From Schmidtea polychroa (taxonomy: Eukaryota): DNA of 64,000 nt. The DNA lies in NCBI GenBank assembly GCA_044892525.1, contig CM097888.1, positions 58,714,001 through 58,778,000 on the forward strand, given 5' to 3'. Under the pieces are notes generated by a model, which made no database searches, was not told the origin of the DNA, and saw only the letters and a list, made by a program, of their open reading frames with translations. Position numbers and translations under genes: made by a program. Positions within the stretch are counted from its first letter, which is position 1; each line of letters starts with the position of its first letter. Of this stretch, positions 19,132-63,798 are shown piece by piece.

Positions 19132-20913
19132 ATGTCCCAATCTGTTCTCTATAATAAATCTATTAATTCTGACATTCCGATTTTAGAAATCAAAGTCTTC
19201 AAACGAAAACTCAGGATTTTTATTGGAATATCTTTGTTATTATTTTTTGTGTTGATTGTAATTTGTATTGTTCTTATTTTACTTTGGCTTGGAATCATTA
19301 ATAAGAAACCGATTGATTTTGTCAAACAAAAAGTTGAAATTAAATGTGGCTCAATTGAAGGAAACGTAAATGATGGCATTGTGGAATTTCTCGGAATACC
19401 TTATGCATTTCCTCCAATTGATCGTCGCAGATTTACACATGCTCATGAAATTGTTGATGAAAAAGGCTGTAAAGAAGTTTATGGAAATTTAAACCACCCC
19501 TATCCGGCAAAGTCATACAAGTCTTTATGTGTCCAATACGAAAAGGATAACAATAAAATAATCGGAAGTGAAAATTGCCTTTATTTAAATGTCTATGTGC
19601 CATCAATAGCGACTAATAAAAAGCTTCCTGTAATCTTTATAATTAGTGGACTTTTCTTTACATACGGCAGTGGAAATATGGAAGGCTTCACAGTTACTCC
19701 AGAAGTTGTTAAATTTACTCAATCTATACATGTAACTTCTAATTACCGATTAGGGCCCATGAATTCTATTGTTAATCCGCAAACTAATGAAACCAATCAT
19801 GGTCTTTCTGATCAGTTGTTGGCGTTGACTTGGATTCATAAAAATATCGCAGCTTTCGGTGGAGATCAGTCAAATATAGTTTTGTATGGAGTTGGATCCG
19901 GTTCGACTGTAGCTTTAGCCCTGTCTAATTCCATTAAGGCAATTCGTTTGTTTTCAAAAATTTGGATATCCAACCCCATGACAATGGTCACAAAGACTAT
20001 GAAAGATGCTTTGAAAGTCCAAAAAACATATCTTGGTGACATTAAAAAATTGGAAGTATTTCAAGACACAGTAAAATTGGAAGCGATTTTCAAACCGTGG
20101 AATTGGACGGATATTGAAACTATAATTGTCAACCAATATTTTAATTTCCCAACTTCAAACAAGGAAATATTCACTAATAGTGGTTCCATTTATTTTTTGT
20201 TGATTGATGATGATTTCATCCATGATGGTAACATTTTGAAACGGCTACGAGTGAACCACAACATTCCTATAGTAATCGGTAATTGCGCAAATGAGGTCGA
20301 TATTTTCCCATCTCCGAGCAGTGTCCGATTTTGGCAAGCTGACTATTTCTATGACTTTATCAAACTGAAAATGAAACCATTTGGAAGAGTAGTCAATGAT
20401 GTATTTCTTGATACATTTAAAAAGAATTATGCCACAGATTCGATTCTGACAATCGAAGAAGGCTACACGAGAGCGGTGACAGATATTAGGATAACTTGCC
20501 CATTGAATTCTATTCTGAAAAAATTAATGGACATGTCAAACCGGCATAAGATTTATAGGTATATTCTGGAAGACAAACACAAACCGATAGATTATTTTAA
20601 CATAAAATATTTCAACGAATTTGCAGCATATGGATGGGACAATATCCTCTATTTTCATGGCTATAAAAGCCATCGGGTTTATGGGGCTTATGGAGAGAAA
20701 GAAATCAGTATGAGTAAAGTTTTGAATAAAGCTATGAAAGAGTTCGCATGGAACGGTGAACTAAAGGATTTTTCAGCGAGCAAAGACGGACATGTATTGA
20801 TGAGTCTTATTAAAAATGGAAAAGTTTATCGAGAATGTTTTTTGAAAACTAACGAATGCAATTTTTGGGAAAAAGAATTGGGAAATATTGAAAAATTTTC
20901 ATGGATAATTTAA
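19132..20913 (+). CDS. Type II membrane carboxyl/cholinesterase-fold protein, predicted non-catalytic (neurotactin-like), 593 aa, intronless
   Basis: Hydrophobic segment at about aa 29-55; COesterase motifs FLGIPYAFPP, SENCLYLNVY, NYRLG, DQLLALTWIHKNIAAFGGD. The GESAG elbow reads GVGSG and the catalytic His region reads AAYGWD. Confidence 0.88.
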   Translation: MSQSVLYNKSINSDIPILEIKVFKRKLRIFIGISLLLFFVLIVICIVLILLWLGIINKKPIDFVKQKVEIKCGSIEGNVNDGIVEFLGIPYAFPPIDRRRFTHAHEIVDEKGCKEVYGNLNHPYPAKSYKSLCVQYEKDNNKIIGSENCLYLNVYVPSIATNKKLPVIFIISGLFFTYGSGNMEGFTVTPEVVKFTQSIHVTSNYRLGPMNSIVNPQTNETNHGLSDQLLALTWIHKNIAAFGGDQSNIVLYGVGSGSTVALALSNSIKAIRLFSKIWISNPMTMVTKTMKDALKVQKTYLGDIKKLEVFQDTVKLEAIFKPWNWTDIETIIVNQYFNFPTSNKEIFTNSGSIYFLLIDDDFIHDGNILKRLRVNHNIPIVIGNCANEVDIFPSPSSVRFWQADYFYDFIKLKMKPFGRVVNDVFLDTFKKNYATDSILTIEEGYTRAVTDIRITCPLNSILKKLMDMSNRHKIYRYILEDKHKPIDYFNIKYFNEFAAYGWDNILYFHGYKSHRVYGAYGEKEISMSKVLNKAMKEFAWNGELKDFSASKDGHVLMSLIKNGKVYRECFLKTNECNFWEKELGNIEKFSWII

Positions 20914-21620: not shown

Positions 21621-22899
21621 AATCATTCCAATGCTGATGTTGCGTTTCACCATTTTTCTAATCCTAATGCAAGATTATAATATTATATTTTTGTATTTTT
21701 CATTTTCATATTAAAACTAAACTTGTAAATGTAATTGCCTTCAAAAATTTACCATGTGACTCAGATGCTGCAAAAGGTTAAACATCCCTGATGTAAATAA
21801 TATTATTTTTGTTTGAATTATTTTCTATATTTTTAATTTGATCCGATTGGTTATGCAGTCACGCATTTGTAAACAATGGAAATAATTGTTTTTGGGATTT
21901 TTTCTCAAATATTGCGTGTCATTTATTATTAATTAATCAATTATGAAGCTGGTTATAATAATAATTATATTAATTTTCTATGTTTCGTGTTTGGAAATGG
22001 CCACCTTCCGGCGAATTAATTTTAAATTATTGCGACCGCATATTGTAAATAATTCCTTCAAATTCCATCATTGTTGTGAAAATAAAACTGAATATGAAAT
22101 CATTGTTCACCATGCCGGTAGTCGGTGGTCGTTTTTCAATAATTTATCCATAGATTACTTCATTCTAATATGACAAGCTGTGGTAACAATAATTAATAGA
22201 TTGGAAATTAAATATAAATATTTAAACAAAAAGATGTAGAAAAATATTATTAGAAAAGAGTAATTAGTTTCACCTGATTAGTTCTGATAAATGACTCTTG
22301 AAGATAGAAAATAGTTCGTCCCATCAAATAGGTTGATGGAACTTTGAATTTGTTGATAAAAAATAGCAATTAGATCATGTTTACTGCTACATGGTTTGTG
22401 AACTAGGTAATTGTCTAATTTATCTAAATGGAAGCACCGGGTCTTCTTAGACTAAAATTCAAAATTATTTATAGGAAAAAGTACCCCATGTTTTTTAAGT
22501 GATTTCACTTTGATTAATAAAAGAAGTCAAAATGTTTTTAATATCTTTCCAGGAAGAAAAATGCATTAACAAAATTTATAGTTCCTAAGATTCTAAGAGA
22601 AAATCGAAACTGTGTCTTATTTATTATATTATTCTGACAGAAAAAAAATTTCATTTCGTTACAGTATTCCCTTTACGCTACTAGGACACACCTAACTTGC
22701 AAATATGGATTGAACGAATATGGCTTTATTTTCACATTCCAAAATTACATTTATAAAAAGAGAAAACTTAATAATAACATTAACACTCGGTAATTTTAAT
22801 TTTTTATTAGATATATTTAAAAAACGATCATTTTTATCACAATCACTTACGAATATATAGTTATTCACATTTTGTTGAGTACTACAATTATTAATTAAA

Positions 22900-24075
22900 T
22901 AAAAATCAGAATCAAATTTTTGATTGGGGAAAAATCTACATTAAGATTATCAAACAAACAATCAGCCAAACATTCATTACATTCAGCATTTAGGGTCCTC
23001 AAAAAATTATCATTGCTTATATGTGATTTATCGCTCCTAACACAATGTCTGTGTGAAGCTTTGAAGCTAACGATATGTCTGATTATCCATCATAGTCGTT
23101 CGGTTCATCATCATATACTGCAGCTATGTTTTCTACATTGTTTCGATCATTTTCTTGATTAGAATTTCTATTATATCGATTGAAATTCCCATGGTTTTGA
23201 TTAGAAGTTCTTTGCAATCTCATCTCGTAGTGATTCTGTTTTTGAAAACACTGAAAACTTAAATGACCTTCTTTACCAAAACACGAACATCGAATATTTG
23301 GGCATTCCCGACGAATATGACCAATTTCACGGCATGCGTAACATTGCACTTTTTAATATTGATCTGAACTTCGACTTTGATACCAGTTTCCATTTAGAGG
23401 TCTTCCACTGAAATTTCTACTGAAATTTCTTTGAAAATCTTCTCGTCCTTCTTGAAATTGATTTCTTTGTAATTTTGAAAATTAATTTTTTTATCACTTT
23501 GATTTCGTTGATTTCCATAATTATTTCTTTTCTCATTGTTATTGTAAGATGTATTTCCAACGACTTAAACTTGTTGTATCTTGGATTTATCTTCATCCAT
23601 TTTCTGCAAAATTCTTTTAATATATTTGCCATTGGACCTTTTTGGCTATCCATCATTTCTTAAATCTTCTTTCGATAATTTTACTTTCAGCAAATCTTCG
23701 TAATTTTATATCTTTTTATTTCACGTTTTTCTTCTTCATTATCAAAACAATGTTTAGGAAGAACGTTGTCAAATTTGACATTGTTAGCAAGTGCTTCAAG
23801 ATTTTCTGAAAATCTTTTTCAATTTTACTGATGTAAGTTTCTAAATTATCTTCTTTTTTTCGATAATTTAGCAACTTTTGCAAATCCTTAGCTAAATCCA
23901 AGTTGTCTTCGAATGCTAATCTAAGCCTTTTCGCATGGTCTTCTTCATCTGGAATTTTGTCATATTTGTTGCGGCAATTTTCGTCCCAATAAGCTCGAAC
24001 AATTACATTTCTTTGACTATTGTTGTTTAATTGTCCTTGGAAGCTTGGTTCTTAGTATAATCGTCCGCGTTTCTC
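22900..24075 (-). mobile_element. Ty3/Gypsy-type gag (two CCHC knuckles) and start of protease, degenerate
   Basis: VIVRAYWDENCRNKYDKI...LRLAFEDNLDLAKDLQKLL; CYACREIGHIRREC and CSCFGKEGHLSFQC (23083-23349); CLADCLFD protease-like relic. Confidence 0.75.
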
Positions 24076-24079
24076 GACG

Positions 24080-24553
24080 GAGCAACTCGTACACTTCATC
24101 GGCCACCTCATAATCTGACAGACAACTGAAACCTGTATCATTAGCTGCGGTGATTTTCTTGACTTGTAATTTCTCAATATCTGCCTCATTTGCTAGTGGA
24201 GAACCACTTTGTTCAAATTGATTCCTAATACTCGTTACACACTTGTCAAAACTTTGATCTGAAAACATGTAATCTGACGAATCGGATCTAAATTCCTGCG
24301 GCAGCAATCCACCAAATAAATTTGATATTAGTTGGCCAAAAACACTATTAAAGTTATCAGGATCTCTTGGAGTCATAAAAAAGGAACCATCAGTTTCGTT
24401 TGTAGTATTTCGAACAGGAACATGACGAATAATATGAGAAACATTCAAGGCATCATCATTATTTTCCATTGAGTTATAACGACAGATATGAAAAGCATTC
24501 AAGGCATCATCATTATTTTCCATTGAGTTATAACAAATAATATGAAAAATCAT
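24080..24553 (-). pseudogene. Intronless RNF115/RNF126-like E3 ligase fragment inside an LTR element
   Basis: RSDSSDYMFSDQSFDKCVTSIRNQFEQSGSPLANEADIEKL...SCLSDYEVADEVYEL matches RNF126 [41 protein letters not shown]...CPVCKDDYALGERVRQL. RING-H2 is cut off before its His/Cys ligands. Confidence 0.78.
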
Positions 24554-24790
24554 ATATTTTCCCAACAGGACAGGAATTCAAAAAATTCCAACAATCAAAA
24601 GCAAATTCAAATCCATTCCAAAAAATCTAACTCGAAAACAACTCACAATTCGAAAACATCCAACAAAAACTCTGAGTCGAAATCGATCCAAACTCTGACA
24701 ATCTTCACAATTGTACGCGTCTGTGTGCGCACACCAAAACCTCCAAAAACCAGTACAACGCACACAGACGCGAGCATCGACAATTAATCA
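24554..24790 (-). promoter_or_regulatory. Structured 5' leader of LTR element (PBS-like start, hairpin)
   Basis: Perfect 14-bp stem 24716-24729 / 24759-24772; 12-nt palindrome GTGTGCGCACAC at 24723-24734; homologous to the 59915-60070 leader (ctcgcgtctgtg). Confidence 0.55.
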
Positions 24791-30517: not shown

Positions 30518-31969
30518 TCAGTTTTTAAATATAAAGTTTTTCACAAATGAGCTCGTTCCTTGGGACGAATTTCCGAATTTCTGTTGCGGTACAAACCCTA
30601 AATATGCTGGTTTGGCGTTGGCTCCATCCACACCAAGCTCACTAATAAAATTATCATATTCTCCCTCTAACTTTGCGTGCTGAGGCGGGAGCTGCATCAT
30701 TGGAATTTGGTTACTATTTACCATACAATCTCTAGGCAAATGTCCAGTGCCTCCGCACAAACTACATATTATTGTATTTGTGACAACGGACTGAGCCTCT
30801 CCAAGAATTTTCAATTTGTTTAATCCTTCCGTTTCTCGATATGTCCCATTAAAAATAGCCAATTGCTTCATTTGATTTTTACGTAATTCATTTTGTAGTT
30901 CTGGAAATTCAATTCCATCTTGGATTATCTTTCTTATTTTCTCAGCTGCTTTATCGACACTTTCTCTTGATATCGAAGTAACATAAGCATGAAGAGGTTC
31001 ATCTTCCCCGGGAAGGGGAGCTCCGTCTCCGTTAAACTGTCCAGGTCTTGCACTTCCTTTACCTCGGATTAGAATTTTTGTACCAGTTTCTTTTTCAAGT
31101 TCTTTCTGCGTCATTCCACGTGGTCCTATAATCAATCCCGCAAAGTTAATATCTGGATAGTCTTCCTGTGGGATGAATATCTTTTCTTCTATTCTTGATC
31201 CGATCATTTTGTCAGGGTAGGGAACAAGTTCTGGTCTTAATGCATGAAGCCTGAGAATCAAATTTCGTTTGCGATCATCTAAGCGTTCTCGCGCTCTATA
31301 TTCTTTTGTGTTGACACGTTTACCATCGTGATTATAAATTGGATCGGGCGATGGTTCACGGCACATTGCTTCGATTTCTTCCGCGTAATTCTTTTGTTTT
31401 AATTTGGTTGTGACGCTGTTCAATTGAATTTGGATCGAATAGACTTCTGCATCCTCTGAGTTTAAATACATTGGGACATTAGCTTGACCAGTTCCCCATT
31501 TACTTTGGCGTTTTCTTTTTTTCGGCTGTTCAGAATTGTTGGTCAAGTTTGAATAATTTTCATTGAAATCTTGATTAACTTGACTTTGAAATATATGGTG
31601 GACATTAGAATCTCTATTCGTATCACAATCTGTCATTTCTGAACGTTTATGTTTCGAGTATCCATCCTTAGTTGGACTTAAATTGGATCTTTCATGTCTT
31701 CGGTGCTTCCTACGATCAGAAGATTTATGAGAATTATCTCTTGAATGGTCACGACGTTTATGGTCACGACGTTTATGGTCACGCTGATAGTCACTTTCTA
31801 CCTCTTTTATTTTACGAGAAGATCGATCTCTTCTTGAAGACTTATTTCTTATTTGTTCTCTAGGAGATCTTTCTCTCTTATGGCGGTAATCCTTATCTTT
31901 CTTTCTCTTTGTATCCCTTGATGAATTTCTCTTGTCTTTACGCGAAGGAGAACTTTCTTTTCTATTCAT
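30518..31969 (-). CDS. SF1: Splicing factor 1 / branchpoint-binding protein, 483-aa ORF
   Basis: N-terminal RS/RD-rich region; U2AF-binding KKRKRQSKWG; REPSPDPIYNHDGKRVNTKEYRARERL; KH domain GLIIGPRGMTQKELEKETGTKILIRGKGS; QUA2 NELRKNQMKQLAIFNGT; CCHC CSLCGGTGHLPRDC. Confidence 0.95.
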   Translation of the reverse strand: MNRKESSPSRKDKRNSSRDTKRKKDKDYRHKRERSPREQIRNKSSRRDRSSRKIKEVESDYQRDHKRRDHKRRDHSRDNSHKSSDRRKHRRHERSNLSPTKDGYSKHKRSEMTDCDTNRDSNVHHIFQSQVNQDFNENYSNLTNNSEQPKKRKRQSKWGTGQANVPMYLNSEDAEVYSIQIQLNSVTTKLKQKNYAEEIEAMCREPSPDPIYNHDGKRVNTKEYRARERLDDRKRNLILRLHALRPELVPYPDKMIGSRIEEKIFIPQEDYPDINFAGLIIGPRGMTQKELEKETGTKILIRGKGSARPGQFNGDGAPLPGEDEPLHAYVTSISRESVDKAAEKIRKIIQDGIEFPELQNELRKNQMKQLAIFNGTYRETEGLNKLKILGEAQSVVTNTIICSLCGGTGHLPRDCMVNSNQIPMMQLPPQHAKLEGEYDNFISELGVDGANAKPAYLGFVPQQKFGNSSQGTSSFVKNFIFKN

Positions 31970-37916: not shown

Positions 37917-38012
37917 ATAATGTCAAAGCTGTATTGTTAAATATTGACAATTAGTTACCACCCGTACCTGTAGGGAATACAATCGCAAGTATCGAGTACC
38001 CGGGTATTTCTA
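37917..38012 (+). repeat. 96-bp exact copy of 48279-48374 (flank, TSD and left end of the Ac-like hAT)
   Basis: Base-by-base identity at offset 10362. Confidence 0.9.
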
Positions 38013-40638
38013 AATTTTGTTTTAATCAAATTCATCATGCTAAAACCTCTTTCACAATCAGCACTCGACGCTTGAAAGTTTCCACAAATATTTTATATTT
38101 TGAAAACCGTCTTCACGAAGAACCAATTGAAGTAGATCATTGAAATTACGACCGTTATTTTTGAATTTTTCCGTAAATAAATATTTTAAATCTTTATACT
38201 CATCCATTATTATTTTATTATCCATATTTGGGATGAGATCTCCATATTTCAATATTATTTTTTTAAAATTTTCATTCCCATAATTAAAATCTGATGTATT
38301 GACAATGCCGTTTTGATCAAAAGCATTCCAAAGATCCATGTCACTATCAGGAAATCTTTTATCCAAATGGTGGCATAACTTCTCAATAAATAGAATTATC
38401 CCAGAAAATTTATGCATATCATTATTACCTTCATCTTCGAGAATTTTTTTCACATCCTCACTCCAATAAACTATATCACCAAGGTACTGACTTTTTAATT
38501 TTGTGATGATCGATTTACAATATTGATGCGCTTCCATATGTGATAAAACACTTTTTTGTAAATATTTTGATAACTTTGTCCCTTCTTTAAAAACATCATT
38601 TAATGCGACCAAGGTTACACGATTAACATTATTTTTTAAAGCTGCAAAGCAATATTTCGCGATTGGATCAACTGAGTTTGAATTATCAAACTTTTCTTTG
38701 AAATATTCTACCAAGACGTCATAATTCCGAATGAACGGAATAATCGCAAAATGGCGAGAAAGCCAGCGTATTTCATTAAGAGGTCGGAACATCAAAACTT
38801 CACAATCCATTAGATTTGCCATTTCTTCAAAGTGATGTTTTTAACAGATGAACGATGGAACATGGTATAAACCAGGGGTGCCCATAAGGTCGATCGCGAT
38901 CTACCGGTAGATCGCGAAGGATTTTTTAGTAGATCTTCATAAAAAATATTTTTTATATAAATTTAGATTTTATATAAAATTTCTGTTTTATGCTTAAATT
39001 TTTTGCCAATTTTCATGTTCTGTGTTCCATTTCTATGGTAATACTAAATAACATTTTTTAATTTTGATTTCGCCATTTCCAAAATGTTATTTAGTTTAAT
39101 TTAGTTTAATTTAATTTTGTTTATTTAGTTTAAATATTATGTAAGTATTAAAAAAGTAGATCGCATACACATTTTGGATGTGAATGTAGCTCTCCTAGAA
39201 AAATTAGTGGGCACCCCTGGTATAAACAGTTCAAAATAACGTTTCTACTTGGGAAATAAGAGGTATACCCTTCCAAGAATCATCGATTCCCAAATCTTCT
39301 CTATGAGCAACACAATGCTGAACTGTCAAGTGGTAAATTTCTCGCGTTAATAGTGCTGCAACTCCATTATAGGCTCCCAACATTACTGCAGCTCCATCGG
39401 ATGTTAACATTACCATCTTTTGCATATCCAGATAAAGTTTTTTATAAAAACATTTTATAGACTCCACAATTGATTTTGCGTCACATGCATTTAACTGTAT
39501 TATGCCAGCAAAAACAGTTTTGTAATTAAATTCAAACCGGTATTTTATATAAATTATTAACATTTCGTTAACTGAAACATCAGTGCTTTCAAATTGTGCC
39601 ATTCAAATTTCATTAAAAGTTTCTTGTTGGATAACGTGATTGATACATTCAACGAATTCAAAAGCATAATTTTTGCTGCGCCAATTTTCTGGAATCTCTA
39701 CATATTTTGCAAAATGATTGTTTATATCTTGAACAGAGTTCATTGAAGCATTCATTTTTATCGCCAGAATAACATTATCTATTAATATTTTAATTTTATC
39801 AACACTAGTTTTTACTCTTGAAACAGCTTCGGTACGATTTTTGCGATCTTGCTGCGTTTCTGTAAATAGTTGCAGAACTCCACCTGATAATCGTGCACGT
39901 AGTATATTGACAGCTTCTATGTGGGATTTGTGATTAATATGTCGCTTTAAATAATCAAGTTTCCAGTCGTTCCACTTTTTTCCCATTGAAAATTCTCCAT
40001 CGACTTTAGCCTCAGCACAAAATTTACATTTAACGGCAGAAGTTTCAAGGAGTACAAAAATCTCACCCAATTTTATATTTTGCTTGCTACAAGAACTTGG
40101 TATTGTTGTTTCAACATAGATAGAAAGCCATTCCGGTTTTAACCCGCCTCACTTTATTCCCCAATTCGCCACTAGCTAAATTTTTCCTTTTCGACATTAC
40201 TTTTGGGAATATCTGAGCTATATTGAGATTTATAGATTATTACAAAACATTAGTATACTACATATATATTAAAAATTATAAAACATACCGTTGTCTAAAA
40301 ACACAATAACTATTGGAAATTGTAACAAATTGATATACACTATTCACTGAAACAAATAACAACCGCTGTGGGCAGATTATATGTAACGAATGAAATGAGA
40401 ATAATTATCTTTAATATTTAAATCTCTAACGAGTTCATAGCCTACTAAGTAACTAATTATTTTTAAATAAGTATTTGAATTTTTAAAGTGGTAACTTTAA
40501 AAACTATAACTTTAGTTCCTAAAAAGAAAATAATTTTTTTTCAAGAAGAAATTTGTTTTTTTAAGAAGAAATTTGTTATGCGCCACTTAAAAAATTCCTG
40601 TGCGCAATTGCGCACGTGCGCACTTAGAGGGAACGTTG
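38013..40638 (-). mobile_element. hAT transposon (ZNF862/C17orf113-like transposase), degenerate, 3'-truncated
   Basis: ORFs 39603-40070, 39231-39602 (LTSDGAAVMLG, QHCVAHRE) and 38058-38822 (IRWLSR, SSVEC-ERGFS). 5' terminus CAACGTTCCCTCTAAGTGCGCAC at 40638. Confidence 0.85.
38873..39219. mobile_element. hAT MITE inserted in the ZNF862-like transposase
   Basis: TIR CAGGGGTGCCCA; perfect 8-bp TSD gtataaac. Confidence 0.92.
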
Positions 40639-41025
40639 ATTACGATTATTTAATAAAATTTTGGATTCTTGGTTCATTTTCTCTGATTTTGCACATATTC
40701 TTTTGGGTTCTTTTGATTTTCTAATTTTCTGATTGGATAATAATTGTTTTTATTAAATTTATTTAAATTATCATTACAATTATTTAATAAAACTTTGGAT
40801 TCTTGGCTCATTTTCTCTGATTTCGCACAGATTCTTTTGGGTTCTTTTGATTTTCTGATTGGATAATAATTGTTTTTATTAAATTTATTTAAATTTTATA
40901 AATTATCATTACGATTTTCAATAAAATTATGGATTCTTCGTTCATTTTCTCTGATTTTGCACAGATTCTTTTGATTTTCTAATTTTCTGATTGGATAATA
41001 ATATTTTTTGTTAAATTTATTAATC
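40639..41025. repeat. Tandem repeat, about 134-bp unit, about 3 copies
   Basis: ggattctt(g/c)g(t/c)tcattttctctgattt..gcaca.attctttt...ttttctgattggataata recurs three times. Confidence 0.85.
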
Positions 41026-44419: not shown

Positions 44420-44734
44420 AATTTTATTTATTTTAATTCTACTTAATTTTGAATTTTTATTTTTATTAACTGGTGGCAATTTTTTATAAATTATGATAAA
44501 TTTTATTTTCGATATTTTATATTTTATCTATTTTTAATTTATTTCAACGCCAACGTAGATATATTTCATTATTTTAATAATAAAATCGATTATTTGTTTC
44601 ATTTTAGTCAAAACATCATTGAAAATGTATAGTGAAATGATTCTAAATAATTGCATGTTAGGCAAAGAAATTCTCCGAAATCGAATGGCGAGGGCGGTTA
44701 CAAATCCCAACTTGGTACCACCTATGTTAATAAA

Positions 44735-46389
44735 ATAAGCGGTGTGTTTGCGAGAATTTTAGGATAAGCGTTATAAATGCAAAGAAGTCATAATGAAAAT
44801 TGCTAAATATGAAAAATGTACGAACGAACTACCGGTAAGCTTTGGCCTGAAAATACGATTTATCGAATCAATAACGCAAATATAAGTCGATGAATAAGCT
44901 AAACTAAAGATTTATTACGAAACGTGGGATTTGTATTAAATGAGTCTGAGCAGCAGACAGTTATTTTCACCCATAAAATACTATTTGGTCAGCCTATTTG
45001 TAGAAAATGAATGGGAAACGAAAAATCGGATGTGAAAAATTATGGTTCAAACAATCAATAAGCGGTGTGTTTGCGACAATTTTAGGATAAGCGTTATAAA
45101 TGCAAAGAAGTCATAATGAAAATTGCTAAATATGAAAAATGTACGAACGAACTACCGGTAAGCTTTGGCGGGAAAATACGATTTATCGAATCAATAACGC
45201 AAATATAAGTCGATGAACAAGCTAAACTAAAGATTTTACAATGTAATATATTATTAGCTCCGTTATATCGGTTAGTGTCAGATTCTTGGATAGCCTTACC
45301 AAACTATCGTTGATTCAAAAATTCTTTAAAAATTGAAATTAACAAGTTTTGAGTATCTAATAAACTTAAATATTAAATAAGATGGCACAAGTGAGTTTCA
45401 TAGACCTATAGTAAAATTATTAACAATATCCGAATCGACATTTTCTATCAACTCATTAACTTTGGATAAAATATTGTGTCGAGGTTCCCAGAATCTCAAC
45501 TTGGTATCTTATATAAATAAACACGTCAACACTGGTTAGTAAGTTTTATTCTGATTTTACAATTACAAAGTAATTGCCTGATAAAAATATCACAACCTCC
45601 TTTAGTTTTATTTGTTGTAATGTGTATATATGTATTGAATGCCTTGTATTGTTATTTGTCAAATGCTTTTTCCTGAGCTCGATATGCTGTATGCTTTAAT
45701 TTATTCTTTCAAAAGTTGATATCAACTATGAAATTCTTCTTGAGCATTTAATTTTTTGACCGATTTGACTAAACATTCCCTATTCTTATACTCTCATCTT
45801 AAACTTTTGTTGCTTTGATTTTAAGGGATTAAGAAACGATTTCCTATTTGTCAAGTGCAATTGCTATTTTCGGGTCATCGTGGTTTCCAGCATTCTGAGG
45901 TTAGAAATGTAAAGGTCTATTATCTAGACATCATAATAGTTTTATCATATAATTTGTCATAATATTATCATATAATTTGTATTTTATTTATTACCATAAT
46001 TTTCTAATCATTATTGTAATTATTACAACCATTATTACTTTAGCACTTTAAGTGCTTTTTTATATTTACATAAAATCGTTTGCATTTTAGGTGCTTTTTT
46101 TAAATGATTTTTTATGACGCTCTTTTATGTTTATTGACAAAAATTATTATTATTAAAGTTAATGGTTGAGAGATAATTTAAAACTTTAATCGATCCAATT
46201 GCAATTATTTTAAATAACAAACGGTACAGAAATTGGATAGAAATATTACGAAACGTGGGATTTGTATTAAATGAGTCTGAGCAGCAGACAGTTATTTTCA
46301 CCCATAAAATACTATTTGGTCAGCCTATTTGTAGAAAATGAATGGGAAACGAAAAATCGGATGTGAAAAATTATGGTTCAAACAATCAA
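44735..46389. repeat. Segmental near-identical duplications A-B-A ... B
   Basis: A about 44735-44913 repeated at about 45057-45236; B about 44914-45058 repeated at about 46244-46389. Confidence 0.85.
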
Positions 46390-48072: not shown

Positions 48073-50812
48073 ACCTGAAGCTGGCTAAAGTTTAGTGAAT
48101 TGCTAATATCAAAATTAAAAGAGAGACTTGTTAAAGAAAGATGTTAGAATATCAATTTTTATCGTAATCGATCACAGAACGTAATTTTATTTTTTCTAAG
48201 AAAAATGAACTCTGTTATTGCTGTAACATTGACGGGTTATTTCAATTTTTTGAACAGGAACATAATTATGCCTCAAATATAATGTCAAAGCTGTATTGTT
48301 AAATATTGACAATTAGTTACCACCCGTACCTGTAGGGAATACAATCGCAAGTATCGAGTACCCGGGTATTTCTAGTAATAAGTAAATTTTCGAGTAACTC
48401 GATACCCGGGTACCTTAAAAAATACCCGATAAACATTATTCACACATTTTATAATTAAAGTTAAAAAAATAAAAAAAATTATCAGCGCAATCTGGATTTA
48501 AATAGGAAAAAACTGTCTTTTGAGTTAAAATTCACAATTGCATATAAGCTGCAATAATTTTTTCTGTGATGTAGTTTGTAGTTTCTACATTTAACAGCTA
48601 ATTGACACCAAAGAAAGTGACATTTGACATAATTTATTATTACACAAAGATTTTTCATCGTACTAATATTGCTTTTTCATCGAGATTTTTAATTTTTATT
48701 GATTTTCCAGATTTTAATCGTTATTTTCTTAATAAATTGTTAATTCTACTAACTATTACTTATACTATATCTATATCTATATCTACAATACATTTTCTAT
48801 TTCTACACGTTAGTTTTTTTTTTAATATTATGATGAACTATAAATTATTTGTTCTTTATACATATACCCATTTTATACATAGAATGCCAAAGAGATCACA
48901 GACTTGGGATTATTTCACAAAAATGTCTGACCAAACTACAGCTAAATGTAATAAATGTGGAAGTTTAATACAAACAAAGGGAGGAAATACCAAAGCAATG
49001 ATTAATCATTTACGCAGTAGGCATGAAATATCAATTAATAAATGCCTAGAACCAGATGCCCCAATTTCGATCGAATCTGGTGATTTCGTGTCAGCTTTTT
49101 GTGCTAAACGCCCAAAACATGATGATGTAAATATTTTAAAATTTATAAAACGAGCATCTAGAAATGAATTATTGGCAAAATGTGCCGCGAAAGATGGATT
49201 TTCTTTTAGAGCGATAACACATTCTGAAGCTATCCGAAGTTTCATCTTATCCAAAAATTATGATATGCCAAAATCTGAAGTCACTATTAAAAATTGTATC
49301 ATGAAGTTCTGCGAGGAAAAACAAGTAGAATTAAAACAAAAATTAATAAAAAAAGGAAGTAATGTTAAACTTAGCATTACTGTCGACGAATGGACAAATA
49401 ATGCTTGCATCCGTTTCATTAATGTTACGCTGCATTCTCCAACAGAGAAACATAACCTTGGATTGACCAAATTGATGGGTCATGCAACGCAACAGAAACA
49501 ATTCGTTTGGTAGAATTAACATTAAATAAATATGGTTTGAATTTAAAAACTGATATTGTTGCATCAACACATGACGGTGCGTCTGTGATGGTGAAATATG
49601 GTGATGAAATAGACGCAATTAGCTAGCTATGTTACAACCACGCTATTCATTTGGCAGTGGTAAGTATATTTTATTCAGTAAAATCTTCTCAGTCAAATAA
49701 CCAAATAGAAGAATTTTCTGAATATGACGATGAAGAAGACAACGAATCTTTGAATGGCACCGATTATTTGTCTAGTGTTGCAAATATGAATTTTGTTGTG
49801 GATTATCAAGAAGAAATATTTGAATTATCAGTAGATATAAGCAATATAGTCAATGAAACAAGAAGAATTTGTAAATTTTTTAAAAAGTCATCAGTAAGAA
49901 ACAGTATTTTGCAAAAACATGTTGTTGAACAGCATGGAAAAAAATTGAAACTATTGTTAGACTGTCGAACACGCTGGAACTCCCTAATAGTTATGATAAA
50001 TCGCTTCATATTATTATCGGGTTCTATATATAAGAAATTGGATGAACTAGGTGCAATGGTTCCATCTGATGACCATATTTCGTTTCTTAAGGAAATAGCT
50101 CAAATATTAGAACCTTTGGGAGAGGCAGTGAGAGAATTAAGTAAAAGAGAAGCCAATTTGTTAATTGCTGAAGGAACTTTGATGTTCGTGTTCAACAAGC
50201 TAAAGAAAATTGGTACACCTTTGGCTATCAGAATGTTAGACGAACTTCTAATTAAAATTAAACACCGTAGAAATACTAGCATAGTCTCTTTATTAATGTT
50301 TCTACATAATGGAAAACATCCCCAGTGAAACGAGTTTTTTTCATATTCCACCAAGCACAATATCAAAATAACTGCAAAACAAATATATGAAAAATTATTT
50401 GTTGAACCGGATCCGGATCCTGAATCACCTGAAGTAATCCTACAAGCTCGAAGTGAAATTTGTGAAGTAGGCGAAGACGACCAAGACTCTTTGAGCAAGA
50501 CATTGATGACATTTCTAGCTTCACCAATTTTAGAATCAACGCAACAACTTGAGAAAGAATTGAAGATAATGGAGGGAAATGGTAAGAGAACACCAAATTT
50601 AGAACAACTTTATAAAGCACTTATTACCATAAAACCAACATCCGTTGATTGTGAAAGAACTTTTTCCATTGCCGGAAATTTTTGCACAAAAATTCGTTCC
50701 AAATTAATGCCGGAAACCTTAAGTAATTTAGTATTTTTAAAATACTATTTCAATGAAACTAAATAAAAAATAACATTATCATTGTCTAATAAAATAACAT
50801 TATCATTTAATG

Positions 50813-53800
50813 CAGTGTTCTTCAACCTGGGTTCCGCGGAACCCTTGGGTTCCGTATAAAAAATTATGGGTTCCGCGAACAAATTTTATGATTTCTTATA
50901 AAAAAAGTTTTCAATATAAATAAACATATAATAATTTATATTTTATACATTGAAAATTTTCTGTTGTAAAATTTTACGCCTTGAAAATTTATGAAATGCT
51001 ACAATGACATTGAAATTTTTTTTATTTACTAAAAATGTAAGAAAAGTATAAATTATCAAAAATATTTGAGAATAATTCGATTTTTTCTTTAAATTTCAAT
51101 ATATAATCCTTTGAAATTTGAATATAGTTTCTAAAAATAAATTTATAATCATAGGATGCGGGAGTTACCTTGGTTTTGTGATACGTATGTGAAATTTGAC
51201 GTGTATTTAATTTAGTTTCTAACTGGTGGATGTGTTTTATTTTAATCTTTAACTAAAAGTTAATATTTAATTAAAAAGTGTTTATTAAAATAAATTTGTT
51301 TATCTGCCTTTATTGCAAAAAGTACAATTATTTAAAAAAAATAACTTTGAGTTTTAATTTATTTCATTTAGTGTAAATACAGGTATGTTATTTTTTATTA
51401 AATATTAAAAAGGGTTAAAAATGTATTAAACTTAAAATGTAAACATTTTTTCTAAATTTAATCTTTTATATTTAAACATTCAACTTTTATATATTTAAAC
51501 ATTTCATTTATAACTTTATATTAAAATATGTATGAATTTTTTTTCTATTTATTAAGTTTTTCATAATTTTAATTAATTTTCGAAATTTCCCAACATTTTT
51601 AACCTCTTTTGGAGGTTTTTTGATAAGTTTAGTTTTGTCATAAAATCGATTTTATTTAAATTTAAATTAAATTAGGATACCATACCGTTATATAATGGAT
51701 ACTTGGTTAAAAACTGGAAAGCTTCCTGCTAAGGTCAAGGAAGTTAATTTAGAAACTGAAACAGCATCGAAAGACAATGCAGTTAGTTCTAGGCTTGATA
51801 CAGAAACATCATCGAAAAATCTGCCTTCTAAAAACAAAATAGCTAATGATTCAGATAAATCCACTAAAAAAAGAAAGTATGATGACGAATATTTAAAATT
51901 TGGATTCGCCTGGATTGGTAATGAAAAAGAACCAAATGGATTATGCGTAGAGTGTGAAAAAGTAATGCATAACAGTAGTTTAAATCCAGCAAAAATGAAA
52001 AGACATTTGGAAACTAATCACCCGACTTTAAAAAATAAGAGTATTGAGTATTTCCAGAAAAAGTGTAATGAGCTTAAACAGAAAAATCAGCAATTTAAGA
52101 AATTCATACATGATGATAATATAAATGCTTTGAAAGCATCTTATTTGGTCAGTTATCGTGTTGCTCAACAAGGTGAAGCTTACACTATTGCTGAAAAATT
52201 AGTGAAACCATGTACCAAAGATATAGTTTCTTGCATGATAGGAGAGAAACATGTTAAAATGGTTGATTACGTGCCACTCTCTGATACTACTGTATCCAGG
52301 CGGATTATGGACATGGCAAATTATTGTGAAGTACAACTCATAAAACGTTTGAAAAATTGTATCCATGGATTTTCTCTTCAGTTGGATGAATCTACAGATG
52401 TATCTGGGTTAGCAATTTTACTGGTATTTGTACGATACATTCATGAAATGGCTGCTGAAGAAGATATGCTTTTTTGTAAAGCTCTACCCAGCAAAACAAC
52501 AGGTGAAGAAATATTTAAAATAATTGATTCATATTTTATACAGCATGATATATCTTGGGATTTATGTCACCATGTATGCACCGATGGTGCAAAAGCAATG
52601 CTTGGGAGTTTGAAAGGTGTAGTTGCGCGTATAAAACAGAAAAATCCTTACATTAAAAATAATCATTGCTGTCTTCATCGACAGGCTCTTGCAGTAAAAA
52701 GAATGCCAGAAGAACTAAAAACTGTTCTTAATGATTGTGTCAAAATTGTAAATTTTATCAAATCAAGGCCGTTGAATTCGAGAATATTCACCTTATTATG
52801 TGAAGATATGGGAAGTAAACATAAAACATTATTACTTCACACAGAAGTTCGTTGGTTATCTCGTGGTAAAGTATTGACAAGATTTTTTCACTTACGAGAT
52901 GAAATCAGATTGTTTTTTGCTAAACATCCACATGAACTATCTCACAAATTAAATGATGTGAAATGGGTTCAACAAATTTCTTATCTTTCAGATATTTTTT
53001 CATATTTTAATGAAGTAAATCTTTCTCTTCAAGGCCCAAATACGAACATTTTCCAAGTTCAAAATAAAATAAATGCAACTATAATGAAATTAAAATTTTG
53101 GGCGGATTGTATTTTGAAATCAAATACTGAATGTTTTTTTAATTTAAATGATTTTTTACTCTCCAATAATGCTGAAATTAATGAAAATGTTAAAATATAT
53201 GTATTGCAACATTTATCTGATTTACAAGATACTTTTGTGGAATATCTTCCTGCTCAGATAGAAAATTTTGATTGGGTTCAAAATCCATTTGTTGAATACT
53301 GCAATAACTATCATTTAACAATAAAAGAAAGGGAGCAATACATTGATATTTCAACTGATTCTACATTAAAAATAAAATTTTTTGAAGAAGAGATTTTGAA
53401 TTTTTGGCTTGAAATGTTTTGCCAATTTCCTGACCTCGCAAAAAAAGCTATTAAAATTTTGATGCCATTTGTGACCACTTATATGTGTGAAAGATCTTTC
53501 TCGCTATATATTGCCACAAAAACAAAATACAGAAATAAATTAGATGCTGAAAATGAAATGAGGCTACAAATTACAAGAATTGTACCAGATTTCAATGTAA
53601 TTTGTAGCAAAAAACAGGCTCAACCTAGTCATTGAGTACCATTTAATATCAAATTTCTATTTTTTTTATGTTAAACTTTATATTTTTGCCATTAATTATT
53701 TAAATAAAATAATTTTATATTATAAAGTGCATTATTTTTTTATAAATTACCACATCGACAACCCCAATTGAATACATATATACATGCCCACATATACATG

Positions 53801-57045: not shown

Positions 57046-57550
57046 GGTATATTGTTTTGTTGGCACAAAAGTTGACATAGTTGACACAAAAACTATGTTG
57101 TTTACACTTCAGTAAAATGACACATACTCATTTTTAAGTGTAAAATGATGATATGTTAACACTAATAGGGTTACCAGATGGTACGATCCTATTCAATACT
57201 AGTTGCGTCATCTTTGCATTCGTAAGTCATTGTAATTTGTAAATGTATCCCATAGTTGAAAAACGTTGGGCAATACTGACTTGTTTTAGCAAAACCATTT
57301 ATTATTTGTTCACTTTTTACCTGCTTTCGTTTGATATTTCATATATTTTCATTATGACTTTAGATCAGAAATAAAATTGTGCAGAATGAGCGTATGAATA
57401 TTGCTTACATAATTTTTAATGTAATCGTTATGTTGAGTGCTCATAATTAAGTGCTAGTAACCAGATCTGAGATCTTAAATTATTAGAAACCAGATCAATT
57501 TTACAAACAATGATTTTAAATCTTATAACATTAAATTTTTGGTGCATTTA

Positions 57551-57930
57551 GTAGGGTAGAATGAGGAGCCGGAAACAAAGGCATATACCCCCCCCCCCCG
57601 GAAGGGGAGGGGGGTTTTTTAATTAAAAAAAATTTTTTTTAAGGTCAACTTAAAGTCATAAAAAATTTTAAGGTCACGATTAGGTCAAATTAAAGGTCAA
57701 AGTCGATTTTAGGCAATTTTAAGGTCTAATTTTAAACAAAGACATTTACGGAACAAAGATATATGACTCATCATTTTATACAAAGACATATGACTCATCA
57801 TTTTATACAAAGACATATGACTCATCAAATTTTTAATTTTCAAAGGTCAGAGCTTCAAGCAAGTGTGTTATTAGAAAGATCTTGTAGATATCTATGCAAA
57901 GGTTTCACCCGGCTCCTTATTCTACCCTAC
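57551..57930. mobile_element. Foldback element related to 36021-36492
   Basis: TIR GTAGGGTAGAAT(G/A)AGGAGCCGG; CATATACCCCCC tract; AAGGTCA repeats; 27-bp tandem atgactcatcattttatacaaagacat; no TSD seen. Confidence 0.7.
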
Positions 57931-59259
57931 TCTACTGTTTTTTTCTCTTTTTAGCCCATTTTCACCGGTCTGATTGGGATTTAAGTGTAACCATGTACAG
58001 GCAAAATTTAATTCTCTACAAAATGACACAATTACAATTTGAGATTGTCGCTTTGTTTGTAATACACACATGTTTTTACGATAAATTTGTATTTTTCCCG
58101 CAGTTAACGTAATTTTCATGGATTACACCAAAACAAACCTTTGTCTAACTCCTTAATCCGACCCTAGGTATAGTACCCATGCTTTTATTGCTAATCCAAA
58201 GGAATAAAAAATACGAGACATTTATTCCAGTTTAAATGATTCATTTTCAAATTTACGAAATCCTTTTTGACATGATTATAAGCAACAAAAGTAAATTCAT
58301 AAAAAGTGCCAATAAAATCGCACAAATCAGCTAATTTGTTGCATATTTTTTGCATAATTTCTTACTAATTTTAAACATTTCTTGAAATAGTCAAAAAATC
58401 AAAATGACATTTAAAATAATGTTTTAATTAAAATATTAAAATTAAATTGATAAAAAAATGACCCCCCTCCTCAATCAAACCGAAGTAAAATTTTTCAATA
58501 AAATAAAGCAACAATTTATTTTAATTGCACCACAGCAATGGAATCAAAAGAATTCAAATATTACTTTCCCCACTTCCTGTTCATCCCAACGTCACAAACT
58601 GTAGAATTTGCGCGCAATTACTAAATAAATTAATTGTCTTAAACGTGATTTTAAATATCCTAGGAAATTTCTGTTAATTTTGTTCCAATACCGCAAATTT
58701 ATTATTCAACTTTTGATTTTGTCATTGGGAAATTTTTCTTTTTTTTTCAAAATAGAACACGATTTATATTTTCCGAATCAGTTCATTAATATTTATGAAT
58801 TGCTGCAATAATCTTGACATTGAATAACTGGAGTTGAATACTACTTACTAAATATATTAACCAAGATTAATAGCTTATTTGTTATGTTATTTTTGCAAAT
58901 GTTGTCATTTCTTCTTTGATTGACTAACTATTCCGGATTTCGAATGTCATTTAATATTTTGGATGAAATTGAATTTCTTGATAAATAATATTTATTTTCA
59001 TTAGGCTCTGATTTGAAGCATTCAAAAAAAGACAAATTCAAACAATAAATAATTAATTTAAACAAAAATAATGATTAATTTAAACAAAAAAGATTATTCA
59101 ATAAAAATAACGCCAATGTTAAATTTCGAATGGATCTTTTCTACATCAATTAAAATTATTATTTTCTCTTTCTTTTAGTATCATATTTGGTTTAACATCA
59201 GAATAAAACAATATAAATCACATAAAAGTTCTGAAAAGCAAATAAAAATATCGACCTTT

Positions 59260-59336
59260 GGAATGGCGAGACTGGATCATATTGGAGAGCCCCCTCACCT
59301 GTGCCATCATTAGTTTTATGGATACATGCGCCCCTG
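59260..59336 (-). mobile_element. Probable hAT terminus (CAGGGGCGCATG) truncating the chimeric element
   Basis: GC-rich end typical of hAT TIRs; partner end not found. Confidence 0.35.
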
Positions 59337-59370
59337 AAGGGAACCACGCTTTACTACGATGATTATTTGT

Positions 59371-59728
59371 CATAATCAAGACGTCTGTTGAAGCTCTTCC
59401 ATGAAAATCGATTCCTCAAATAGCATAAGGTAACACATAACTTTCATAACTTGTCATAGTGCGAGATACAGGATCACTAGAGTTCAGAACGATACCTGAG
59501 GTACGACCTGAAATGTACAAAGAAAGAACTGCTTGAATTTCAACATACATCATTGTTACAATAAATGTCTCCAACATGATTGAACTGGAAGCTCTACTGA
59601 CGAAATTCCCATTTCACTGTGAAGCATATGATGCCTAATCCGTTCATATCATCCAAATTTGTTTCAATGGTGTGTTCAAACTTGTATTTCAAAGTTAAAT
59701 TACCTTTCATAGAATGAACATTATCATC
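59371..59728 (-). pseudogene. ACT: Intronless actin fragment (approx. residues 55-190), decayed, with internal deletion
   Basis: MKGNLTLKYKFEHTIETNLDDM / [21 protein letters not shown] / [69 protein letters not shown] vs actin [28 protein letters not shown]...[31 protein letters not shown]. Confidence 0.92.
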
Positions 59729-59734
59729 AAAATC

Positions 59735-59904
59735 GCCTCCATTTGGACCAGTAACATTTCTTGATTCAAGATCCTTAGCACCTTCAAAAATATCAAAAAT
59801 AACTTCTCCATCGGTTATTAAGTTGCATTTGAAGCAGCAATTGATTTAAAATGCACAAACACCTTTTTATCATCACTTTTATTGTCAACACTAAGTAATC
59901 GGTA
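59735..59904 (-). pseudogene. Y-box/cold-shock-domain fragment, decayed
   Basis: YRLLSVDNKSDDKKVFVHFKSIAASNA / ITDGEVIFDIFEGAKDLESRNVTGPNGG vs YBX GFINRNDTKEDVFVHQTAI...[27 protein letters not shown]. Confidence 0.82.
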
Positions 59905-59914
59905 TCAATTCTTT

Positions 59915-60070
59915 GAGAAATCGAAAATTCCAGAAAAAACCAGACTATAAATAACTACCAAAATTCCAGAAGCAATCAAAGAATTCCAATAACCAAAGCT
60001 AGTCCACTCGCGCCTGCACTCAGACAAGAAGAAGTGTGCACTCACAGACGCGAGTAGTCAGAAATTACCA
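59915..60070 (-). promoter_or_regulatory. PBS-like site and structured 5' leader of LTR element
   Basis: TGGTAATTTCTGAC then ACTCGCGTCTG...CAGGCGCGAGT stem (11 bp, one G-U) enclosing the GTGCAC palindrome; homologous to 24554-24790. Confidence 0.55.
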
Positions 60071-60144
60071 CTAAGAAAAATTGTTTAATGAATTTTATTT
60101 CACGAGACTTTTATTCGAACACGAGTTTTATAGTATCCGTCACA
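60071..60144 (-). mobile_element. Putative very short LTR (about 74 bp)
   Basis: Minus strand TGTGACGGATAC TATAAAA ... AATAAA ... AATAAA ... directly upstream of TGG; partner LTR not found. Confidence 0.45.
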
Positions 60145-60645
60145 ATCTGAAAAAAAATCATTTTTCATCACTAAAATACCATTTGTGGATAAATTTACTT
60201 AATTTTCGGATCTGGCATAAATCATCCAATTCTTTTCCAATTCTAGCATTTTTGGAAGTTCGCTAGACTCGTCCAATATATTGTTGCAGACCTTTTATTA
60301 GTTTCCGAGACTTGATTTTGACATCTAGCAATTTACTTATTATTTCGAAAAACTCTCGCATCAAGTTTTCTTCGTTAGGTTTTCACTAAAAGTAATTTCT
60401 CTTTAAAAATATGTCTATCAGTCCTCTTATATTGAATTCACTCGCCAGTAGAAATTATTAGGTTGGTAAATAAGGAATGTAATTTTCTGCACTATTTGAA
60501 CTGTAATGTATAATATTTGTTTAGATGCTTCACTATTTATTGCCATATTGTATATCAATTTAAACCTTGAGTCCAGCTAAGTAATTTGATACTAATCTTT
60601 CATGTTTATATTGGTAATGTTTATATTATTTAACGTAATTAATCA

Positions 60646-61480
60646 ATGATGAAAAGTAATGAAATCCAAGCGATTTACCTTTATGAATATAAACGAGGTC
60701 TGAAAGCATGAGATACAATTCGCAATATTTGGCCCGAATACAACTAATGAACGTATGATTCACACGGTTTAGAAATGGAAACTAGAACCTTGAAGAATTA
60801 GTGAATTGTAACTGACCATCAGCTCTTGACAACAACAAATTGAAGGCATTAGTTGAAGTTGATCTATGTACAACACCCAAGAAGCTTGATAAAAGATTGG
60901 CTGTAACACATCCAACAGTTCTGAAACATCTCAAAGCAACGAGAAAACCCAAAAAACTAAACAAATGAATCACGCACGAATTCCAAGAAAAACAAATTCC
61001 CGTTATGACCGTTATGACGATGATTGATGATTTGATCAAAATGAAGCACCGAAACAAAACAGAAATTGCACCAAAAAAGGTAATGATGACTGTTTTGTGG
61101 TCACAAGCGGGACTGATTCATCACAGTTTTCTAATGGCGGCTCGTCCATATGAGCAAGGCATTTATTGCTTGCACTTCAATTTTGAGAAATTCTATATTT
61201 TAAAATTTTAATATCTTTTTAAAAGAACTTTTGGCTACTGAAGACAATTTTTATGATTTAGTAATTAAAGAATTTTGTAGAAAAACAAGAAGAATTTTAT
61301 TTTTGAATTTTTTTTATTGCTTTTACAAATTTTTTGAGTACGAGCCGCCACTGCAGTTTTCTGAATTCGGCAAGACGATTACCGCGGAAATATACTTTCG
61401 TTAAATCGATGAAATTCCTAATTAACTTCAACGTATGTGACCAGGTTTAGTCTTCAGAAAGGCCTTTGTTTTAATTAATA
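60646..61480 (+). mobile_element. Mariner relic
   Basis: IYLYEYKRG, RFRNGN..LEE, PKKVMMTVLWSQAGLIHHSFL, TITAEIY. Confidence 0.85.
61132..61353. mobile_element. hAT MITE inserted in the mariner relic
   Basis: TIR (C/T)A(G/A)TGGCGGCTCGT; perfect TSD cagttttc; removal restores HHSFLNS..TIT. Confidence 0.9.
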
Positions 61481-63396
61481 AAGTTTTTTTACCAACCTAA
61501 TGGCAATTCCTTAATCATTTAAACTACTTAATATATTTTATTAATATCGTAACTAAACATATATTTTAACAGAAAGTGTATAAATTATATAAAAAAATAT
61601 TAAATAAAATTTGTTCAATCAATAATAGAAGAAATATAATTAGTTCTCGTTAAATTCTTTTTATAATTCATTAATTAATAAATAATTAAACTGTAATTAA
61701 GATCACATTTTCATTTTTTTCAGATTATTTCCAGCTGAAATTGTTTTTCTTCTGGAAAACACAATCTTTACAAAACAGCTCTTGGACAGTATGTTATAAG
61801 GGTATCCAAAATATGCCACAGGTGGACCTTTTTCAAATTAATTGAAACTAATTAAATGCCAATAATATAATTCTGGTAGAATTATTAATAATATAAAAAC
61901 AATCAGGGGAAAACATCATTTTATCAAAGCTTTTGAAAAAGTTGGAATTGAATTATTTTTTCCTTAGATATATTTTATTTTTAAATTACATATTTTCAAT
62001 AATATTTTTTTTCTATTTCAACAATTTATAATAATAATAATAATTATTATAATAATAATAATAATAATAATTATTATTATTATTATTATTATTTTGATAT
62101 TACAATTAAAGTTGATTGGCCTAGAATAAAAATTCCTAAAAAATAACAGTAAAAGAACAAGCTGAAATATTGAAACAGAACGTGACATAGAAATAAGAAA
62201 TAAATGTCAGGAGAACTGAGCCATCAAGCCAACAAGACCACCGAAAGAAATGTCATCATTGAAACCTATATGTGATGAGTTTGCGATTAAATAAGTAACG
62301 TATGCTTCATTAATTTTTTGCGATGAATTTGAAATTCAGAAACGAAATCCCATTTCGATATCAGCCTAGGAAAAAAAGTAATTAACTAGTATAATTTCTA
62401 TCTGCGGATATAATTTTCAAATCGAGTAAAGTTGTATTCAATATCTCGGGAGATTGTCAAAGAAAATTTGTGATCCTTAGAGACATAATGTTCCATACTA
62501 TGGAAGAAAACTAGAAGTGTATGCATATTATCGTCCACTCTACAGTTTATCTCCTCATTAAATCGACCTTGTTGGAAAATAATCTGCAGAAATCTTTCTC
62601 ATTAACTTTGAATAAACTATACAATATGAATCGGGAATATTTTTAATGTATTTTTAAGCTTTGATTTTAATTAAAGAATTTGGGAATTCCAATCGGAGTT
62701 TAGCGTTTGAATGCACTGTGATGTGTGAACTCAGTGTTTTTCCTCGTTTTGTTTTCTCTGGTGTCAGTATTGAGAGGATTTATAATTTGTATTATTGTCT
62801 ATTTTGTACAAATATCGATACGCTTTTATTTTATTGAAACAATAATTATGGGAAACTTATGATTAAATGGATTTACATTCATATCCGTGACTAGCATCTA
62901 TGGTGACTGGAAATTCTTTACTAATTTCTTCGTATACCAAAGACTTTCTTTATTCATGTGAAGGTTCTTCTAAAAGATCACTAGTGTTTCCTGTGAAAAG
63001 AGTTGGAATTGTTTTATTTTATTAAAGATGAAACAATAAGTGAAATTCAGTCTTGGTTGTGATATTCTTTCCATTATATTTTGTCTGCTATAATTTACAT
63101 TCATAGTGTATATTCATCCCAACCTTTCAAGGGATAGAGGCACAAAGATTTAAGGTTTACTGAATGACAGCATAGTTCTTAGTCTTCAATGTACTTAGCA
63201 AATATAGTTATATACTTAAAAAGAAAAAGACAAGTTAATATCTTTTCGTTTATTTGATCATCAGTTAGATATATTAAGTTGATATTTCACTTTTCCGTTC
63301 GTTTTATAGGAATTTCAGATAATAAATTATCAAATTATGAGCAAAAATAAATAAATTCACTGTTAAACAATTAAAGGATAATATAAGCCTTTTGCT

Positions 63397-63798
63397 GTGG
63401 TGGATGGTGGCGCATCGCCGTTCTTGGTGGAGCGATTCATCTGGTTAATTCCGTTAACGAACGAGACTCTAACCTGCTAAATTGTACATTTGTGTTCTAA
63501 CGCAAATGTTGATTTCTTAGAGGAATAAATAGCTTTTACCTTAATGAAATTTAGCAATAACAAGTCTGTGATCCCCTTATATGACCGGAACTGCAAGTGC
63601 GCTACAGTGCGCTACAACAGCGATTTTAATTCCTTGCTAGAAATGGCTGGGTAACCTGGTAAATCACTGTCGTATCAGAAATAGTGGATTGAAATTGTTC
63701 CACTTGGACGAGGAATTCATAGTAAGCACAAGTCACTAGCTTGCGTTGATTACGTCCCTGTCCTTTGTACACATTGTCCATTGCTACTACCGATTGAA
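63397..63798 (+). pseudogene. Decayed 18S rDNA fragment (V7-V8 / 3' region)
   Basis: ggttaattccgttaacgaacgagac, gcaataacaagtctgtgat, gaggaattc, ttgattacgtccctgtcctttgtacac. Has a 4-nt deletion in CTTAGTTGGTGGAG, a 10-nt duplication and many substitutions at invariant positions. Confidence 0.92.

Follow-up and report, generated by a model that had tools for sequence, protein, structure and literature searches.

How did fragments of two unrelated host genes, one encoding a Y-box-type cold-shock domain (CSD) and the other actin, come to lie side by side in the genome of the flatworm Schmidtea polychroa, and does a retroelement promoter stand in front of them? The locus is found near one end of the 64-kb stretch of contig CM097888.1 that was analyzed here as a whole (hereafter, the window). 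The original prediction described an LTR-like start site driving a chimera of the two genes, which it attributed to multi-template capture by a Gypsy-like particle. All of the sequence features that it listed are present on the minus strand at the positions given for them. What they belong to is a mosaic pseudogene of about 800 bp (approximately 59255-60057, minus strand) with at least four parts, which follow one another along the minus strand as a GC-rich leader, the CSD fragment, the actin fragment, and a GC-rich tail. The mosaic belongs to a known kind of sequence, namely, mosaic or chimeric pseudogenes, and it is old, dead, and decayed: both gene fragments are broken by frameshifts and stops, and there is one internal deletion.

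The CSD fragment (59735-59880, minus strand) covers the Pfam CSD profile from approximately position 20 to the end and has suffered one frameshift and two stops. The first of its two pieces aligns with positions 20-37 of the profile (PF00313) with an E-value of 0.025 and a score of 14.9 bits, which is below the Pfam gathering cut-off of 27. The second piece matches only Y-box proteins in the PDB (zebrafish YB-1, YBX1, and YBX2; E = 0.006-0.014), and the PDB alignment ends at the NVTGPNGG motif. Given that the two adjacent pieces occur in the correct order, homology to a decayed CSD is supported.

The actin fragment (59374-59734, minus strand) corresponds to residues ~50-191 of the approximately 375 residues of actin. 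Compared with actins in the PDB, its first part aligns from residues ~46-54 to residue 84 (E = 0.009-0.018), and the second piece aligns with residues 120-176 with an E-value of 1e-16; in addition, a 65-aa piece scores 29.1 bits against the Pfam Actin profile (PF00022), above the cut-off of 27. Mapping by local tblastn, with the actin P0235 as the reference, yielded outer bounds of 59374-59725 and covered residues 57-191 in two frames, with one in-frame stop and a net loss of about 18 codons, in good agreement with the deletion of about 17 codons, the frameshifts, and the stop that had been noticed from the sequence alone. In total, this fragment has at least one frameshift and one internal deletion, and its matches are interrupted by one in-frame stop. 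It shares 59% identity with P0235, an ordinary actin, and in a search of 1.84 billion representatives the best matches of the actin piece are likewise ordinary actins (60-67% identity); the three top-scoring proteins contain actin segments repeated in tandem and are not closer relatives. Because of this level of identity and because nothing closer than ordinary actins was found, we regard the fragment as an old dead copy of canonical actin rather than as a distinct protein family.

The 352 nt mapped by tblastn span 135 actin residues without any intron-sized interruption, and the copied span crosses positions 85 and 122, two intron sites with wide conservation among actin genes (PMC12146513). 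Here, such uninterrupted coding is weak evidence, because the coding sequences of two neighboring genes in the window run on for 483 and 593 codons without a break. Exon boundaries were also considered as the cause of the fragment ends and of the internal deletion, and were rejected: the bounds do not fit the actin intron positions 85, 122, and 204 (PMC12146513).

The two fragments abut without any spacer and share both their orientation and an open frame. As had been predicted, the CSD fragment ends at NVTGPNGG and the similarity to actin begins right after it, 0-3 residues past the end of the CSD in the same frame. The junction is located inside a single open frame of 83 codons, and only one open segment in the interval of 55-64 kb is longer. 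Overall, the coding-like part is made up of pieces in two frames. Thus, the chimera of two host genes stands as originally described, with CSD and actin fused in one orientation, and the juxtaposition is far beyond chance. Both pieces are internal and partial, that is, the Y-box gene is represented by its CSD only and actin by residues ~50-191 only. Searches of public protein collections, which are word-indexed and apparently do not include the source genome, returned no candidates for either the junction piece or the actin piece, and JGI metagenomes, among which the source genome is apparently not included either, contain neither of two exact 29-mers, one derived from the junction and one from the leader. 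Exact look-ups of the proteins of four ORFs of the window gave no record either.

On either side of the gene fragments lie sequences that stand out by composition. The window is very AT-rich, with 28% GC overall and GC fractions of 0.21-0.35 per 2 kb. The leader (59881-60070, minus strand) starts with TGG; its hairpin part (59990-60059) has 53% GC, which puts it in the top 0.4% of the 70-nt tiles of the window. The tail (59255-59373, minus strand), which adjoins the actin fragment, has 47% GC, a value reached by no more than 0.5% of 119-nt tiles. Since both the leader and the tail fall within the top 0.5% for GC, we consider the whole as a unit of at least four parts that is foreign to its AT-rich surroundings. 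The hairpin in the leader, which was part of the original prediction, is real: it occupies 60006-60055 and consists of a GC-rich 13-bp stem and a 24-nt loop, and the fold of the 171-nt leader has a z-score of -2.4, with folds at least as stable in 2 of 200 shuffled sequences. Neither the leader nor the tail has a match in Pfam, the PDB, or Rfam on either strand, including permissive E-value scans; no similarity between the two GC-rich flanks, direct or inverted, was found. The tail is probably a further captured piece. Within the leader, a 19-nt motif occurs twice (59924-59942 and 59960-59978), and the leader's 18-nt core has a single occurrence in the window. The minus-strand segment 59905-60070 also contains a GUGAGU donor-like site within the GC-rich stem and, downstream of the stem, a AAUUUUGG motif similar to an Sm site; together with the 19-nt repeat, these motifs give the leader, judged by its letters, a loose resemblance to a spliced-leader or snRNA-like gene.

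Upstream of the leader is the AT-rich stretch of 74 nt (60071-60144, minus strand) that had been taken for the LTR-like start site. It begins with TG, contains TATAAA and AATAAA, and is directly followed by TGG at 60068-60070. The length of 74 nt was chosen after the fact, and Gypsy LTRs are usually far longer. Immediately before the TGG, the stretch ends in TTAG, so that the CA expected at an LTR terminus is absent. The motifs themselves are abundant: over the two strands of the window (128 kb), there are 256 occurrences of TATAAA, 373 of AATAAA, and 1228 of TGG, the last corresponding to approximately one per 100 nt per strand. In 27 of the 1228 TGG sites, TATAAA and then AATAAA are found no more than 100 nt before the TGG, and 5.8% of 400-nt stretches of the window hold the complete pattern. 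TATA, AATAAA, and TGG thus carry no weight in DNA with 28% GC. An LTR primer-binding site comprises ~8-18 nt complementary to the 3′ end of a tRNA, whereas the proposed site consists of three bases, and the AT-rich sequence after them does not resemble what would pair with a tRNA acceptor end; given that TGG is encountered about every 100 nt on each strand, a three-base site carries no information, and the reading of TGG as a primer-binding site is not supported. No tRNA gene was detected in the window.

Nor does the 74-nt stretch have a partner. With a repeat finder and sensitive blastn, neither 60071-60144 nor any other part of 59150-60250 matched elsewhere in the 64-kb window; specifically, no second LTR copy is present in the 59 kb downstream or in the 4 kb upstream, and the matching 3′ LTR and further copies of 59915-60144 that the original prediction proposed to look for are lacking throughout the window. 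Present once in the window, without a CA end, and with motifs at chance level, the 74-nt stretch is read here as ordinary AT-rich spacer and not as a start site, and its interpretation as an LTR or promoter is not supported. Pfam searches with the 76 open segments of the window that are at least 70 aa long recovered hAT, BED, mariner, and host-gene domains and zinc knuckles only, and no reverse transcriptase, integrase, protease, gag core, or Helitron domains; the same retroelement and Helitron domains were also absent from open segments of at least 45 aa between 55 and 64 kb. The involvement of a Gypsy-like element is accordingly not borne out. The sole retroelement-like trace in the window, 36 kb away, is a pair of CCHC zinc knuckles on the minus strand (23086-23352; Pfam zf-CCHC, E = 1.7e-9), one of which occupies 23302-23343. 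The pair lies among successive open segments of this strand (22695-24577) that contain no other domain, and it may represent what is left of a gag-like or ORF1-like sequence.

There is no poly(A) 3′ of the mosaic, and no target-site duplication (TSD) was found, words shared between the flanks being no more frequent than expected by chance; no terminal inverted repeats (TIRs) flanking the region were found.

To account for this arrangement, we tentatively favor, at slightly below even confidence, a single ancient chimeric retrocopy produced by template switching of a reverse transcriptase among abundant RNAs. The mRNAs for Y-box proteins and actin are among the most abundant cellular mRNAs. In a single reverse-transcription event, the enzyme would have switched templates among abundant cellular RNAs and generated a patchwork cDNA, which would then have been integrated and left to neutral decay; an RNA intermediate, one event only, and the kind of reverse transcriptase are what we infer from the make-up of the mosaic. 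Internal pieces that are cut short on both sides and have no poly(A) after them favor an LTR retroelement, acting in a virus-like particle, over a LINE. In the LINE route, template switching takes place during target-primed reverse transcription, and the resulting copies have a 3′ piece that reaches the 3′ end of its template, a poly(A), and a flanking TSD. The mosaic is similar to LINE-mediated chimeric retrotranscripts and processed pseudogenes in its presumed assembly as cDNA from multiple abundant RNAs and in its intron-free look. Unlike LINE-type copies, it has neither poly(A) nor TSD, and its 3′-most identifiable piece, that of actin, stops at about residue 191.

LTR-mediated retroposition is known to proceed by microsimilarity-dependent template switching, which yields two-gene as well as multi-gene chimeras, and its signature consists of partial mRNAs, chimeras of several genes, 3′ truncation, and the lack of poly(A) and TSD (PMC5131818). 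Chimeric retrocopies of this type include CG4799_CG11924_r of Drosophila, which combines two genes, and Bs1 of maize (Tan et al. 2016, PMC5131818). Like Bs1 and the retrocopies that Tan et al. (2016) describe, the mosaic consists of partial internal pieces of unrelated host mRNAs in one orientation, is truncated at the 3′ side, and has no poly(A) or L1-type TSD. Unlike those retrocopies, it is old and heavily broken, and within the window it is accompanied by neither flanking LTR-retrotransposon sequence nor an LTR pair nor secondary copies. Because flanking LTR-retroelement sequence is absent, we do not file the mosaic as a proven LTR-mediated retrocopy. Decay could hide such flanking sequence, in which case the retroelement sequence around the mosaic would simply no longer be recognizable. 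It also speaks against the favored retrocopy that LTR-retrotransposon flanks, a second LTR, and a reverse transcriptase or integrase domain are absent from the window, and that the locus is filled with the debris of DNA transposons (mariner, hAT, and a MITE-like element).

As regards the original prediction, template switching by a reverse transcriptase is supported by internal, truncated pieces in the same orientation, without an intron-sized gap or poly(A), and the Gypsy-like particle is not supported. That the locus is a relic of multi-template capture in the particle of a flatworm LTR retroelement, with the hairpin leader as the last remaining retroelement piece, appears quite improbable. 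The stricter version, in which 60071-60144 is the 5′ LTR of a Gypsy-like element, the TGG is the start of its primer-binding site, and the hairpin lies in the retroelement leader, can point to motifs in the stated order, to a hairpin that is real, and to a capture mechanism documented in animals (PMC5131818). We nevertheless consider it highly improbable, given that about 6% of 400-nt stretches carry the same motifs, that there is neither a second LTR nor a CA end, and that no gag-pol remnant is found nearby.

If reverse transcription was not involved, the pieces could have been captured at the DNA level, as genomic fragments of the Y-box and actin genes carried by a non-autonomous Helitron-like or Pack-type transposon that has since decayed. 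Mosaics of short gene fragments in the same orientation are typical of such elements, and the locus resembles them in having unrelated gene fragments side by side in one orientation and a GC-rich hairpin near an end. On the minus strand, CTAG stands a few bases past the hairpin, and on the plus strand CTAA comes about 17 nt past it, a pattern that loosely recalls the 3′ end of a Helitron but is no proof of one in a unit with a single copy in the window. Neither tetranucleotide is followed by a T, and the usual Helitron hairpins are smaller than one with a 13-bp stem and a 24-nt loop. DNA capture would also be in keeping with the surroundings, which include mariner (60816-61401), hAT (48602-53635), and MITE-like (57550-57931) sequences, and with the intron-poor genes of the window, from which captured DNA could look intronless as well. 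Yet, in contrast to Helitron and Pack-type elements, the mosaic has no confirmed termini, TIRs, TSD, or retained intron; its flanks are dissimilar in either orientation, it is present in a single copy in 64 kb, and the window encodes no Helitron Rep/helicase or other matching transposase. We therefore consider DNA-level capture unlikely, although it is the alternative to which we give the most weight. Repair of a double-strand break, into which unrelated snippets of DNA or cDNA, Y-box and actin cDNA among them, were end-joined as filler without any integration by a retroelement, would explain why at least four short unrelated pieces meet at abrupt junctions, with no TSD, poly(A), or element termini, and it would be in keeping with the presence, 3.2 kb away, of a decayed fragment of another abundant RNA, the 18S rRNA. 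Random ligation, on the other hand, would bring two pieces together in a shared orientation and frame in only about one case in six, and the sequence bears no positive mark of this route, which we judge to be distinctly unlikely. An assembly chimera or chance similarity is hardly credible: the actin match reaches an E-value of 1e-16 and exceeds the Pfam cut-off, two independent CSD pieces occur in the right order, the junction falls inside a rare open frame of 83 codons, and such heavy decay is unlike what would result from misjoined reads of live genes.

If the chimeric retrocopy that we favor is indeed RNA-derived, it would be a further case in which reverse transcriptases have joined parts of abundant host mRNAs in new combinations, a known route of exon shuffling; retrocopies have been little described in flatworms. 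Should capture in an LTR-retroelement particle prove true, LTR-mediated exon shuffling would thereby be recorded for the first time in Platyhelminthes, and the in-frame junction of CSD and actin would hint at a fusion ORF that was once expressed. The practical value of the analysis lies mainly in annotation: the locus is to be recorded as a mosaic actin/Y-box pseudogene, and as neither a gene nor an LTR.

The remainder of the window contains a mixture of mobile element remnants, repeats, and host genes. Closest to the mosaic, at a distance of ~700 bp and not part of it, is a mariner-type transposase remnant that extends over several frames of the plus strand (60816-61401; Transposase_1, PF01359, E = 2e-7; helix-turn-helix match, E = 0.007). 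The decayed 18S rRNA fragment (63309-63766, plus strand) matches positions 1158-1661 of the Rfam model SSU_rRNA_eukarya with 169 bits and lies outside any rDNA unit. The MITE-like unit at 57550-57931 is bounded by GC-rich TIRs of 23 nt, which are 96% complementary and 336 nt apart, and encloses three tandem repeats of 27 nt (57753-57833). Two hAT-type transposase regions are located on the plus strand between 48602 and 53635. The first is split into a BED finger (48602-49510) and a dimerization domain (50329-50763), and the second consists of an intact ORF of 646 aa (51695-53635). A perfect direct repeat of 96 nt is found at 37917-38012 and, 10.4 kb away, at 48279-48374, just upstream of the split hAT region; the former copy adjoins ORFs on the minus strand that carry a zinc finger of the C17orf113 type (39603-40070).

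Two host genes appear to be intact, and both are represented by uninterrupted ORFs: one for a carboxylesterase of 593 aa (19132-20913, plus strand) and one of 483 aa for splicing factor 1 (SF1)/branchpoint-binding protein (30518-31969, minus strand). The relatives of the latter ORF include one sequence at 77% identity and are otherwise from molluscs and flatworms, at no more than 53%. Several local repeats and one run of Ns complete the picture, namely, blocks of 180 and 151 nt that are duplicated with 98-99% identity within 1.7 kb (44734-46389), a unit of ~134 nt in three tandem repeats (40639-41021), a GA-rich array of degenerate ~60-nt repeats (18289-18596), and a run of 151 Ns flanked by an (ATT)n microsatellite (8381-8531).
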